A stretch of 32,000 bases of DNA from Wallemia ichthyophaga EXF-994 (taxonomy: Eukaryota; Fungi; Basidiomycota): positions 60,001 to 92,000 of the forward strand of contig NW_008806295.1 of assembly GCF_000400465.1 (NCBI RefSeq), read 5' to 3'. Made by a program: the position numbers and the translations under genes. Under the pieces are notes generated by a model that ran no database searches, was not told where the DNA came from, and saw only the letters and a program-made list of their open reading frames with translations. Of this stretch, positions 1,867 through 29,908 are shown one piece after another (position 1 is the first letter of the stretch; each line of letters starts with the position of its first letter).

Positions 1867-3886
1867 TTAGAAGTGATTTTGTTGGTTGGAAAGGATATTG
1901 ATAAGAGCATCAATATCGATCAATTGGCCACCGCGCTTGTGGGTCTTGATGTTTGAGAGGGCGTCGACGACAGCATCAACATCGATGAGAGAAGGCTGAG
2001 AGCCGCCACGCTTCAAAATGTTGGAGAGAATGTTTGCGCCAAGATCTAAATCAAGGAGGCCACCGCCGTTGTCATCGTTTGATTGCTTGTCGCCCCATTG
2101 GCCACCGCTGCTTCCGCAGTTGTCGCCACAGGATTGATCGTCACCCCATTGACCGCTGTTGTTTTGCTCGTAAGAGCCGCTGTTGTTTTGTTCAGATGAG
2201 CCATCTTTGTTCACTTCGTATGAGCCATTTTGGTTCTGGTCCACAGTGGTCGCCACAGGATTGGTCGTCACCCCATTGGCCACCGTTGTTGTTGGATGAG
2301 TCACCGTTGTTTTCACCCCATGAGCCGCCGTTGTTGTTGTTGGATGAGCCACCGTTGTTTTCACCCCATGAGCCGCCGTTGTTTCCGCCAGATTGGTCAT
2401 CCTTGTTCTCATCACAGTCGGCATCGTCCTTGTTCTTGTCTCCGCCGTTGTTTTCACCCCATTGGCCATCACCGCAGTTGTCACCACAGGATTGATCGTC
2501 ACCCCATTGACCGCTGTTGTTTTGCTCGTAAGAGCCGCTGTTGTTTTGTTCAGATGAGCCATCTTTGTTCACTTCGTATGAGCCATTTTGGTTCTGGTCA
2601 TAAGAGCCATCTTGGTTACCGTTCCATTGGCCGTCTTTGTGTTGCTCGTATGAGCCATCCTTGTGTTGCTCGTATGAAGAATCTTTGTGTTGCTCGTATG
2701 AAGAATCTTGGTGGGTGCTCCATTGACCATCTTGACCACCTTGCTGGTCTTCTGGACAGTCTTCACCGCGCTTGTGGTGGTAACCGTGAGACTTCTCCTT
2801 GTTGGAAAGGATATTGATAAGAGCGTCAATGTCGATCAATCCACCGCTGCGCTTGTGGCCTGAGAGGTTTGAAAGAACGTTGACGAGAGCGTCGATATCA
2901 ATCAAACCGCGCTTGAAGTGACCTTGTTGGTTGGAAAGGATGTTGATAAGGGCGTCAATGTCGATCAACTCCCCACGACGTTAACGAGAGCGTCGATATC
3001 AATAAAACCGCGCTTATGGCTGTTGTTGAGAACGTTGGCGACAACATTGGCGTCGATAAGCTCGCCGCCGCGCTTGTGGTGACCGTGACCATGACCATGA
3101 CTGTTTTTTTCCTCGTTGGAGAGAATGTTGATAAGGGCGTCAATGTCGATCAACTCCCCACCACGCTTGTGGCTCTTGAGATTTGAGAGGAGGTTGACGA
3201 TGAGGTCAATGTCGATCAGAGAGCCGTCACGCTTAAAGTGACTTTGTTGATTGTTGAGAGCATTGATAACTGCATCAATGTCGATCAACTCCCCGCCACG
3301 CTTGTGGCTCTTGAGGTTTGAGAGGAGGTTAATGATGAGGTCAATGTCGATCAGAGAACCACCGCGCTTGTGATGGTTAGTGAGTATGTTTGCGACAACG
3401 TTGGCGTCAATGAGTTTACCATCCTGGTAGTGAGCTTCCTTGTGTTGCCATTGACCACCACGCTTGAAGTGGTGACTTTCCAAGTTTGAGAGCAAGTTGA
3501 CAACAGCGTCGATGTCGATTAATTGGCCATCACCACGTTTGTGTCCTTTGAGGTTTGAAAGGAGGTTGAGGACGAGGTCGATGTCGATAAGAGAACCTCC
3601 ACGCTTGTGGACTTGTTCGTTTGAGAGGGCGTTAACCAAAGCATCGACGTCGATGAGTTCATCATCGGAACGCTTGTGGTAACCGTGATGACTGTGGCTT
3701 TCGTTGGAGAGAATGTTGATGAGTGCGTCAATGTCGATCAATCCACGCTTGTTGGTCTGGCTGATAGCGCTGATGTTCTGTGCAAAAGTTAGACTGTAGT
3801 GACAGCAACTAGATACAACCCACCTCCACTGGAGCAGCGAGAACAGAGGCGCTGAGGGCCATGAGAGCGACGACTGAAAATTTCAT
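1867..3886 (-). CDS. Secreted Kex2-processed repeat protein (KEP): signal peptide plus ~17 KR-delimited LIDIDALINILSN-type peptides and a central G/N/D/Q-rich block; intron 3778..3823; two frameshifts (~2978, ~2242) in this sequence
   Basis: ATG at 3886 gives MKFSVVALMALSASVLAAPVE (signal-peptide-like). A GTGGGT...CAG intron of 46 nt follows, then NISAISQTNKR-GLIDID... in frame with ORF 2965..3741. The same repeat continues in ORFs 2192..2968 and 1867..2562. Almost every repeat ends in (H/F)KR. Confidence 0.85.
2114..2599. repeat. 128-bp near-perfect direct repeat (2114..2241 and 2472..2599) inside the KEP gene
   Basis: The two copies match at offset 358 with one mismatch seen. Both encode DQNQNGSYEVNKDGSSEQNNSGSYEQNNSGQWGDDQSCGDNC. 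Confidence 0.9.
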
Positions 3887-3954
3887 TGTAACGAGTGTTG
3901 TGTTGTGAAAAGGTGAGAGTTTGAGATGGAGAAGAGAGAATAGAATGCGCGTAA

Positions 3955-3960
3955 TTTATA
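3955..3960 (-). promoter_or_regulatory. Putative TATA box of the KEP gene
   Basis: TATAAA on the minus strand ~70 nt upstream of ATG 3886, followed by a pyrimidine-rich (CT) tract. This is typical of strongly expressed fungal genes. Confidence 0.4.
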
Positions 3961-12217: not shown

Positions 12218-13398
12218 TCAAGACATATCCACCACACACCTCACACACTCACCACCGTGTAGATGCTCAAAAGCCTCATTCATCTCGCTCAGGCTGCGCG
12301 TGTGAGTGTGGAACGAATCCACGTCGAGTTTGTTATTGAGGTAGTCCACAACAATCCCCGGCAGCTCGCTCTTGCCTTTAACACCACCGAAGACGCTACC
12401 TTTCCACACTCTACCGGTGATGAGCTGGAGGGGATTAGTGGATATTTCGTCGGACATTGGCGCAAGACCGATGATGACGCTCTGGCCCCACCCCTTATGG
12501 CAGGCTTCGAGGGCGGATCTCATCACGCCGACGTTTCCAATACATACGATAGTGTGGTCGAGACCGCCTCCAGTGATATCAATCAGGTGCGATTCGATGG
12601 TCCTGTCGATGTGAAGGGGATTTACAAAGTCTGTTGCGCCGTGTTTCAAGGCGTGTTGCTCTTTGTTGCTGTTGGTATCTACTGCAATGATCCTGCGCGC
12701 TCCCGCCGCTTTCGCCCCTTGTACAGCGGCCAGACCTACGCAGCCGGCGCCGAAGACAGCGACCGTCTCGCCCTGCACCTTCTGCTTAGTAGCAGCGCCG
12801 TAGCCGGTAGTTATGCCGCAGCCGAGCAAGCAAGCTTTTTGTAGAGGAGCTTTCTTATCGACCACTGCAACAGAGTGCCTGCTAAGTACGCTGTACTGAG
12901 CGAAAGTGGAAGTGCCCATAAAGTGATTAACAGGGGTACCGCGGCAAGAGAAGCGGGTGCTTCCATCGCTCATAAGGCCCTTGTACTGTGTAGCAACGAG
13001 ACGCTGACATAGATTAGTTTTGCCGGAGATACAGAATGTGCATGAGGTGCACTCGCTGATGTACAGCGGGATCACGTGGTCGCCGGGTGCTATGTCGTCG
13101 ACACCTTCACCTACGCTCTCCACTACGGCACCACCTTCATGACCCAGTATGCACGGGAAATTGCTCAGTAAATCCTTTCCTGTCATGGCGAAAGCATCCG
13201 TGTGGCATACTCCTGTGTGCTCTACGCGCACTCGCACTTCGTCACGCAACGGCGGTGATACTTGTATTTCTTCGACCACGAGCGGAGTGTTGGCTTCCCA
13301 TGCTACGGCTGCCTTGCATGTTATCACTTGCTGCAATCTGTTTAGTGTGCCTGTCTTCTCTGATCTACACTCCCCCTCACATTGGCTGTGTTAGACAT
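12218..13398 (-). CDS. Zn-dependent alcohol dehydrogenase, class-III-like (divergent paralog of S-(hydroxymethyl)glutathione dehydrogenase); intron 13331..13380
   Basis: MSNTAN/QVITCKAAVAW after splicing. Motifs GVCHTD, ILGHEG, structural Zn cysteines (CTSCTFC...NLC), [10 protein letters not shown] and VFGAGCVG are present. Confidence 0.9.
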
Positions 13399-18132: not shown

Positions 18133-19587
18133 ATGGCCGTCACTCTAGGAGAATACCAAGCGGGGGGACTGCGGATGCTCGATGGGGAGGAAGTCGATGA
18201 GCATGGCGTGGGGACGATACCGCTCGCTGCCGCCCTCCCCAGCGGACACGCTCCCGTGAAAGCGCGTAAGAAGGGCGTGATCGACAACAGCAAGGAGCAT
18301 CGCAAGGAGTACTGTCCCAACGAGCCAGCCAGCGCGCGTCTGCGGGCGGCGGTTGCAGATTTCCAAGCTGCGTACCGCCTCACTGCGAACGAGCACGCCG
18401 TTCTACAGGCATTCACGACGTACATCAAACTCCCGATGAATGTACCGCGCGACCCTCGTTACGGACACACTCTCAAGCCCAACGGGGAACGCGAGTACGC
18501 CGACATCGACACCTTCCTCGCAGATCCACCGACGCTCGTCGCGACATTCGCCGAGGTCTTCTTGGATCAGTTCGCATTCGACGTGGATCGCATCGCCTGT
18601 CTCCCGGCTCTCCTCAGCTCTTTCTTGAGCTTCGTCAGCGCGTCCGGGGCTGTGGAGGAGTGTACAAGTGGGCTGAGCAGGGCGTTGGATGTAGTGCGCG
18701 GCCCTCTGCGCTCTTTTCTGGCTTCTGCCGCCCGGATACTGAGTGCTCCCCACCTCGGCGCTTTCAACCGCGCCGCCCTCTTCGCTTTCGATATCTGGAT
18801 CGATGCTCCTCAGTACGGCGTGTTGCGCTATGTCGACGATATCGAGCGAGTGGAGGTCCTCGAAGAGGATCGGGTGCATTGCGATGCTTCCACTGCTAAC
18901 ACACCCAACAGCCTCCTCTCCCCTCTCGCTAGAGACCAGGTGTACTCGCAGCTCCTCGCCAAAAGCCTCGACGACATACCGTTACTGGTGCAGCACGCGG
19001 CAATGAAGATGCTAGGCGAGCCAGTGCAGTACACGCCCACCGTAGACACACTGCCCGACGCGGTGCTGTGCGAGTTGAGGAGGGTGTTTGCGGAGAATAC
19101 CGCCACGCACCAGCTCATACTCAACAAAGACGGCGTACAAGTGCTCAACAGATACCTGAGCGGGGGTGGGAGTGACACCAACAACGGCACCAACAACGGC
19201 AATGTGAGACACTCATACCGCCACGTCTTCATCGAGAGAAGCGTGCGGCAGATCAGCAGGCTCGACCGCTACAGCGAGGATTTGTGGCTCGTCGCTCTCG
19301 ATTCTGTGGCGGGGAACGAGGAGACACGGCGAAGCAAAGCCGTTGGCTGTTCTCGCGGTGAGTCTGTCGGTAACTCCACACATACCACGCACTCCGCCAT
19401 CGTCACTCTGTGGGATACCTCTTTCGTGCAATACGTAGGTGGCGTTGACGCACTTATCGGAATCAAGCTCGACGCTTTCTTTCACAAGGTGCAGCAGGTG
19501 CAACAACAGCGCGAGCATGTGCCCGGACTTCCTGAGTCGTGGTGGGTGGTGAATCTCGTCCATGTATTGAGGCAGCGACAGCTGTAG
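18133..19587 (+). CDS. Uncharacterized 484-aa protein, possibly a divergent Arb1 (Argonaute chaperone ARC complex subunit)
   Basis: Long intronless ORF. The family guess comes from recalled similarity of EYCPNEPASARLRAAVADFQAAYRL, FLSFV and LIGIKLDA..F to Arb1 blocks and is unverified. Confidence 0.7.
   Translation: MAVTLGEYQAGGLRMLDGEEVDEHGVGTIPLAAALPSGHAPVKARKKGVIDNSKEHRKEYCPNEPASARLRAAVADFQAAYRLTANEHAVLQAFTTYIKLPMNVPRDPRYGHTLKPNGEREYADIDTFLADPPTLVATFAEVFLDQFAFDVDRIACLPALLSSFLSFVSASGAVEECTSGLSRALDVVRGPLRSFLASAARILSAPHLGAFNRAALFAFDIWIDAPQYGVLRYVDDIERVEVLEEDRVHCDASTANTPNSLLSPLARDQVYSQLLAKSLDDIPLLVQHAAMKMLGEPVQYTPTVDTLPDAVLCELRRVFAENTATHQLILNKDGVQVLNRYLSGGGSDTNNGTNNGNVRHSYRHVFIERSVRQISRLDRYSEDLWLVALDSVAGNEETRRSKAVGCSRGESVGNSTHTTHSAIVTLWDTSFVQYVGGVDALIGIKLDAFFHKVQQVQQQREHVPGLPESWWVVNLVHVLRQRQL

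Positions 19588-28729: not shown

Positions 28730-29908
<1,179 letters not shown>

Follow-up and report, generated by a model that had tools for sequence, protein, structure and literature searches.

The Rep1 polyprotein of Ustilago maydis is a secreted basidiomycete product that yields, in bulk, about a dozen amphipathic peptides separated by Lys-Arg (KR) dipeptides; the Rep1 properties used here for comparison are partly general background and partly those given in the Le Marquer survey. Alpha-factor precursors (MF-alpha) have a signal peptide, a pro-segment, and tandem KR-bounded peptides for Kex2 and Kex1, and Ece1 of Candida albicans, the candidalysin precursor, is likewise secreted and is cleaved at KR to give short helical peptides. 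Kex2-processed repeat proteins (KEPs) have been catalogued as a class, with a signal peptide, similar KR-bounded fragments, and repeats (Le Marquer 2019, PMC6339444; Umemura 2020, PMC7329392). Both surveys included the genome of Wallemia ichthyophaga, counting 6 and 7 KEPs, and the gene described here may be among those counted. This gene lies at positions 1867 to 3886 of a 32,000-nucleotide (nt) stretch of the W. ichthyophaga EXF-994 genome (contig NW_008806295.1, positions 60,001 to 92,000), hereafter the window. It shares the KEP attributes, and we think it probable that it is a single gene encoding a secreted KEP.

The gene is on the minus strand, running from an ATG at 3886 to a stop ending at 1867, and is composed of a signal peptide, an intron, a pro-segment, and 17 units of the form GG(S/E)-LIDIDALINILSN-tail-KR, with a total of 16 KR sites (Table 1). 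The original prediction, made from the letters of the window, proposed a secreted precursor with a signal peptide and about 17 units sharing this core, nearly all ending in KR, and the count, the core pattern, and the coordinates were right. KR closes 15 of the 17 units, the exceptions being unit 11, where the reading frame is broken, and unit 17, which forms the C terminus. The mature peptides predicted after KR removal are 18 to 30 amino acids (aa) long with isoelectric points of 4.1 to 6.4 and net charges of -1 to -6, so the acidic products that had been proposed are borne out at the level of prediction, all being net negative. The residue following KR is G, S, or D, and the units contain no cysteines; these are present only in a species-specific spacer.

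The Le Marquer 2019 definition of a KEP calls for a signal peptide with no transmembrane segment, at least three similar fragments after cleavage at KR or RR, and repeats that make up at least 15% of the protein. The signal peptide opens with an MK n-region, continues in a hydrophobic core of 15 residues, and shows the small residues V-L-A ahead of A-P, and no other hydrophobic stretch is long enough to span a membrane; both features were judged by inspection and by conservation in three species. Ten complete units are in the same frame as the signal peptide and 17 are present overall, compared with 15 in the orthologue L017, and the repeats account for about 85% of the 291-aa product read from the sequence as assembled and for nearly all of the 359-aa L017 protein.

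Orthologues are present in two other Wallemia-like genomes, in which the order kinesin-3 tail, this gene, Icp55-type aminopeptidase, GNAT, and mitochondrial carrier is conserved; the contigs were located through the best matches to the adjacent aminopeptidase and kinesin. In the closer species (L007 and L016), the neighboring proteins are 86 to 87% identical; the L007 gene begins with MKFSIIALMALGATVLAVPVE, has an intron at the same place, and continues with KLADVDAQVNALSKTHKR GGSLIDIDALINVLSGGKKR, and the L016 gene terminates with ..SEGELIDADVVANVLSKQH, closing in ..LSKQH without KR. In the more distant species (L017 and L018; GC content 33%), the neighbors are 68% identical, and the same 359-aa gene is found identically in two independent metagenome samples. 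It codes for a signal peptide, has a 49-nt intron, and carries 15 units in a single uninterrupted frame, lacks the acidic spacer, and ends in NNEAH*, its last unit also without KR. The window protein aligns to the L017 orthologue with a phmmer score of 360 bits. The signal peptide is conserved throughout, as MKFSIIALMALGATVLAVPVE in L007 and MRFSTIVSLFAVGATVLAAPIQ in L017, as is the position of intron 1 (46 nt in L007 and 49 nt in L017).

Across 34 units from all three species, the core residues L1, D3, and L11 never change, I2, D5, and N13 change rarely, and almost every unit has hydrophobic residues at positions 4, 6, 7, 8, and 10. The tails or linkers vary from 2 to 13 residues and are polar, without hydrophobic positions, and KR is present at 30 of the 31 internal unit boundaries, the remaining one being QR. 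This conservation of the unit pattern and of KR is far beyond chance. Within the window, the unit cores differ at a saturated proportion of synonymous sites (pS, 0.70) and a much lower proportion of nonsynonymous sites (pN, 0.21), giving a dN/dS of about 0.12, and the cores of units 12 to 14 compared with the first frame segment behave similarly (pN, 0.17; pS, 0.70). The peptide core is thus under purifying selection, and the low dN/dS together with saturated pS indicates that the repeat is old and maintained by selection on the peptide, rather than being a young DNA repeat.

Two further features of the distant orthologue are evident. In L017 (9955-10962, minus strand), the unit-core types AVVEALNN, AVVKALNN, AFISLLSN, LFVSILNN, and ADVEALNN recur in a fixed order, suggesting that several units together form a higher-order repeat. 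Prokaryote-style gene calling omits its intact 341-codon exon 2 (L017 9952-11077, and the same in L018) because exon 2 contains no Met, except where the exon runs off a contig end.

The gene is already annotated, as GME4426_g, a hypothetical protein of 616 aa (1851 nt) starting MALSASVLAAPVENISAISQTNKRGLIDID, and it is strongly transcribed. Values in reads per kilobase per million mapped reads (RPKM) are 2038 at 10% NaCl and 4477 at 30% NaCl (log2 ratio, 1.14; false discovery rate, 0; PMC3849046 Tables S4 and S6), and at 30% NaCl it ranks 61st of 4884 genes, among those for ribosomal proteins (PMC3849046), placing it in the top 1.3% by expression. The precursor is therefore made as a transcript, and one that is salt induced. 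The genome paper confines its discussion to genes whose log2 ratio exceeds 2 in absolute value (PMC3849046); GME4426_g, induced less than this and having no domain, was for those reasons passed over. At 30% NaCl, expression is highest for GME4675_g (282 nt; RPKM, 59,657; log2 ratio, +4.5 versus 10% NaCl; no gene ontology term), and GME4674_g, numbered next to it, is likewise in the top five (PMC3849046 Table S4). GME4675_g may be another small secreted salt-response product.

The published model departs from the gene described here at two places. It begins at the second in-frame ATG (3862; protein MALSASVLAAPVE..) so that the first 8 signal-peptide residues are missing, and SignalP-based secretome pipelines could overlook the gene as a consequence. 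It does include the splice of intron 1, which is seen in the published protein as ..APVE|NISA.., but it also spans the first frame break with a 47-nt 'intron', reading ..ALVNVVGS|HFKRGLIDID.., with the loss of most of unit 12. This intron is an invention of the ab initio gene caller that hides the frame break. The locus thus illustrates how repeat precursors are mishandled, with a clipped signal peptide, an invented intron, and an orthologue left uncalled.

Table 1. Coordinates of the repeat-peptide gene and adjoining features in the window (position 1 is the first letter of the window)
Feature	Positions	Strand	Remarks
TATA-like box TATAAAT	3954-3960	-	About 70 nt 5' of the ATG, then a CT-rich leader
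Exon 1, 21 codons, signal peptide MKFSVVALMALSASVLAAPVE	3886-3824	-	
Intron 1, 46 nt, canonical GTGGGT..CTAAC..CAG	3823-3778	-	Unspliced frame runs into TAG
Pro-segment NISAISQTNKR, closed by the first KR	3777-3745	-	
Units 1-10, all KR-ended, in frame with the signal peptide	3744-3010	-	One predicted helix per unit
Unit 11, truncated GFIDIDALVNVVGS, then in-frame TGA (2967-2965)	3009-2965	-	
37-nt perfect copy of 3125-3161	2940-2976	-	Frame break 1 at upstream edge (2976/2977)
Units 12-14, intact, with KR, one frame off units 1-11	2974-2768	-	
Acidic low-complexity spacer, about 700 nt, no KR	2767-2068	-	Holds frame break 2 (2241/2242)
116-nt perfect repeat inside the spacer	2126-2241 = 2484-2599	-	Frame break 2 at upstream edge
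Unit 15, degenerate GGGLLDLDLGANILSNILKR	2067-2008	-	
Units 16-17 and stop TAA (1869-1867), last unit without KR	2007-1867	-	

The TATAAAT box upstream of the gene is a putative promoter element, with the corresponding sequence kept as CTATAAATTACGC in the closer orthologue L007 and present as TATAAATATAAA in L017. Between units 14 and 15, the spacer codes for about 230 residues rich in Q, N, G, S, D, and W, with a net charge near -40, and includes the sub-repeats (D/G)SSYEQHKD, GGSWGENNG(G/D)SSNNN, and QWGDDQSCGD(N/H)CG, the last in three copies. It has no Pfam match and is not present in the distant orthologue L017; it may be a halophile-type acidic module.

The locus was originally described as a repeat polyprotein, and while all of the units are present, they are spread over three frame segments rather than a single open reading frame (ORF), with two frame breaks and a nonrepeat spacer. 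The first segment extends from the ATG to the TGA at 2967-2965, inside unit 11; the second is shifted by one frame and includes units 12 to 14 and most of the spacer, to the TGA at 2194-2192; and the third returns to the first frame and includes the spacer end and units 15 to 17, to the TAA at 1869-1867. As assembled, the frame of the signal peptide takes in 10 complete units and a truncated one, in a 291-aa product. No canonical intron that repairs either break was found, and only short, implausible GT..AG pairs restore the ORF. The EXF-994 reference is a SOAPdenovo 1.04 assembly of Illumina reads alone, built at K=21, with genes called ab initio by GeneMark-ES. Seven of the nine repeated 21-mer blocks in the window fall in this gene, and the breaks adjoin the two longest. 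Other assemblies also falter here: 7 of the 10 metagenome contigs that carry the distant orthologue break off within the array, scaffold L019 has a 100-N gap there, and two Logan contigs of the closer species join by an overlap of about 29 nt, which indicates a branch in the assembly graph.

We consider it somewhat likelier that the frame breaks are assembly errors than that they are real mutations, because the assembly used short reads at K=21 and the breaks are exactly at the edges of perfect repeats, because the downstream units are intact with their KR sites, an equal selection signature, and an orthologue-like terminus, and because other assemblies also fail at this locus. The true gene may then have additional units. 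It is possible, if the less expected outcome, that the breaks are real and that EXF-994 carries a recently truncated allele in which units 12 to 17 and the spacer are an untranslated relic. Both stops (2967-2965 and 2194-2192) are there in the sequence as given, no canonical intron restores the frame, and the 358-nt offset between the 116-nt copies is not a multiple of three and would fit a real segmental duplication; moreover, the 291-aa product would still be a valid KEP. Against this account, the units beyond the breaks remain whole, keep their KR sites, and share the dN/dS signature of the others, and the array closes with a KR-less unit immediately before the stop as in both orthologues; in addition, both breaks of this K=21 assembly coincide exactly with an edge of one of its two longest exact repeats here, and other assemblies fail similarly.

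Structure prediction is consistent with a short helix in each unit. AlphaFold modeling of the 261-residue array as a single sequence gave a mean predicted local distance difference test (pLDDT) score of 34, nonetheless with one short helix per core, and a four-unit construct modeled with an alignment of the window's own units gave a pLDDT of 62, with four helices and the KR-GG junctions in loops. L1, position 4, position 8, and L11 would form an a/d-like hydrophobic stripe on such a helix. The proposal that the peptides are amphipathic is supported in part: the hydrophobic moment of residues 4 to 14 averages 0.47 (z of about 1.7 versus shuffles), but that of the whole 14-residue core is unremarkable (z of 0 to 0.8). 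Likewise, the His-rich C termini are general in W. ichthyophaga, with H or HF directly before KR in all 14 of the KR-ended LIDxD-type units (the degenerate unit 15 has ILKR) and HGHGHGHH in one unit, but they are not conserved in the distant orthologue, in which 6 of the 14 internal units end in GGKR or NGKR.

The unit core has no match in Pfam, in PDB, or in the searchable literature, and the core motif was not found in the readable parts of the Le Marquer 2019 and Umemura 2020 KEP catalogues. An exhaustive search of 1.84 billion representatives gave just five weak hits, to proteins of leucine-rich repeat (LRR) or tetratricopeptide repeat (TPR) type, and a word-indexed protein search gave none. 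Thus, no strong hit to a characterized family was found in Pfam, PDB, or the protein libraries, although these libraries also miss the gene's own 616-aa product, even though a similarity like the 360-bit one to the orthologue would be easily picked up, and the empty protein search is accordingly weak evidence of rarity. The libraries similarly miss the W. ichthyophaga aminopeptidase when queried with a 100%-identical exon, although they do include other W. ichthyophaga proteins, so that negative searches with this window carry little weight in general. Two metagenome scans, one with peptide patterns and one with back-translated LIDIDALIN, showed no relative, and their eight single matches are attributable to chance. 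Among the collections searched, the family appears to occur only in Wallemia-like genomes. The suggestion that this is an undescribed peptide system therefore needs qualification: the core is without a match in Pfam, PDB, or the literature, but the gene has been annotated, its expression has been published, and Wallemia KEPs have been surveyed. It is an uncharacterized family inside a well-defined precursor class, and it introduces no new principle.

If the gene product behaves as other KEPs, the precursor would enter the endoplasmic reticulum, the late Golgi would be the site of Kex2 cleavage after each KR, and the K and R would then be trimmed by Kex1. About 15 to 17 acidic peptides of 18 to 30 residues would be released, together in W. 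ichthyophaga with a large, very acidic fragment from the spacer that has unit 15 at its end. Each peptide is predicted to be one short helix with Asp in the first turn and His or Lys at the C-terminal end. The peptides could self-associate by their hydrophobic faces, stay solvated in brine by their acidic faces, and contribute to the wall changes at high salinity.

We tentatively favor a role as a bulk material of the cell surface or wall, comparable with the Ustilago Rep1 repellents. The W. ichthyophaga wall thickens threefold at high salt and its hydrophobins are rich in acidic residues, as described in the genome paper (PMC3849046), and in the KEP survey a wall role like that of Rep1 is raised as a speculation for KEPs of Wallemia and other xerotolerant fungi. 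A wall role is favored because a transcript at the level of those for ribosomal proteins would give about 17 peptides each, because the units vary conservatively, which suggests a physicochemical rather than a receptor constraint, because there is no STE13 signature and the peptides share their acidity with the W. ichthyophaga hydrophobins, and because expression rises at the salinity of threefold wall thickening. The Wallemia hydrophobins (PMC3849046) are similar in being secreted, highly expressed, salt-responsive, unusually acidic candidate surface-active wall components, but they are single folded domains with eight cysteines, in contrast to the cysteine-free peptides predicted here. Rep1 itself has no detectable sequence similarity to the Wallemia precursor, and the predicted Wallemia peptides are about half as long and acidic. 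The gene is a strong candidate for studies of wall biology, given its expression, its doubling at 30% NaCl, its apparently restricted distribution, and the approximately 17 acidic peptides per transcript.

It is unlikely that the peptides are a new, Wallemia-specific class of brine-adapted self-assembling surface material, in which salt, pH, or metals would tune the association of acidic helices by way of the Asp pair and the His tail. W. ichthyophaga is described as more halophilic than any other known fungus, and the genome paper reports no unusual ion-transport or osmolyte traits and points to the wall (PMC3849046); peptides of this class, together with the hydrophobins, would build the thickened wall and the cell clumps that enable life in saturated NaCl. 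Should they prove surface active in brine, the same applications as for hydrophobins would be open to them.

Several considerations weigh against the interpretation of the locus as a secreted KEP that supplies wall material. As assembled, the frame that begins at the ATG stops after unit 11, and if the breaks are real, the strain would yield just 10 to 11 peptides. One boundary in the distant orthologue is QR instead of KR. Kex2 cleavage and secretion are predictions, the helices come out as moderately amphipathic, and confidence in both structure models is low. Salt induction is only 2.2-fold, and reads that map to multiple positions can distort RPKM over a repeat array. The evidence for the surface role is limited to analogy, expression level, and salt induction. 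For the precursor itself, the conservation of the signal peptide, intron, core, and KR, the purifying selection, and the transcription are all in line with the secreted, KR-separated arrangement first suggested for it, which is probably correct.

The same peptides could in principle act on other organisms or on metals, as anionic, His-bearing helices that form Zn or Cu oligomers and permeabilize the membranes of competitors, or as metal buffers. Metal-dependent anionic antimicrobial peptides exist, and the broad hydrophobic face of the helices, the high expression, the His preceding KR in every W. ichthyophaga LIDxD-type unit with KR, and the HGHGHGHH unit are all in keeping with this; we nonetheless regard it as improbable, since the His tail is not conserved in the distant orthologue, with GGKR or NGKR closing 6 of 14 internal units, and a net negative charge disfavors attack on membranes. 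The Ece1 peptides are mutually unrelated, with one being a cationic lytic toxin, in contrast to the single anionic family of the Wallemia units. A diffusible pheromone- or quorum-like signal sensed by a receptor is more improbable still. Such a role would suit the architecture, which matches that of alpha-factor precursors, and the KEP survey reports Basidiomycota KEPs with hormone-like features. But KR is followed by G, S, or D and never by the XA or XP dipeptides of the STE13 type, the units are heterogeneous in both sequence and length where pheromone copies are near-identical, and mRNA at the level of ribosomal protein genes with 17 copies per transcript implies bulk production. The Wallemia gene also differs from MF-alpha in having far more units, and W. 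ichthyophaga is reported to have lost sexual reproduction.

It is very unlikely that the protein remains uncleaved as a folded or disordered wall repeat protein, either an LRR-like solenoid or a helical repeat, with KR being a mere part of the repeat. The core does fit L-x-x-L-x-L-x-x-N-x-L, the units are of 20 to 25 residues as in LRRs, and the sole exhaustive-search hits are to weakly similar LRR- or TPR-like proteins. However, the structure models are helical and not of a beta-solenoid, the linkers of 2 to 13 residues are without hydrophobic positions, and KR is retained at 30 of 31 boundaries amid varying flanks. LRR identity in particular was rejected, with no Pfam LRR model matching at E≤10, no PDB match, polar and variable linkers, and no capping modules. 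A repeat precursor with KR sites is also the arrangement of ribosomally synthesized and posttranslationally modified peptides (RiPPs) of the dikaritin type, such as ustiloxin or phomopsin, and this is extremely improbable here: Pfam scans and gene lists show no DUF3328/UstYa, tyrosinase, or methyltransferase gene in the window or in the orthologous flanks, and the long cores contain none of the aromatic residues that serve in cross-linking. With only housekeeping neighbors and cores unsuited to cross-linking, RiPP identity was rejected.

The neighbors in the window are all housekeeping genes, including those for the kinesin-3 tail, an Icp55-type aminopeptidase P, a GNAT acetyltransferase, an EF-hand mitochondrial carrier, TAF4, Duo1, and Nup96. 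The window also has two paralogues of a zinc-type alcohol dehydrogenase (ADH_N plus ADH_zinc_N), 15 kb apart at 12218-13336 (minus strand) and 28787-29908 (plus strand). A single-exon ORF of 484 aa at 18133-19587 (plus strand) is identical in every residue to one on scaffold KE007245.1 of GCA_000400465.1 (78133-79587) and also occurs in two further assemblies; it matches no Pfam family significantly and lies in the most GC-rich part of the window (18 to 21 kb; 59 to 61%); the cluster to which it belongs at 90% contains only W. ichthyophaga strains and one Logan sequence.

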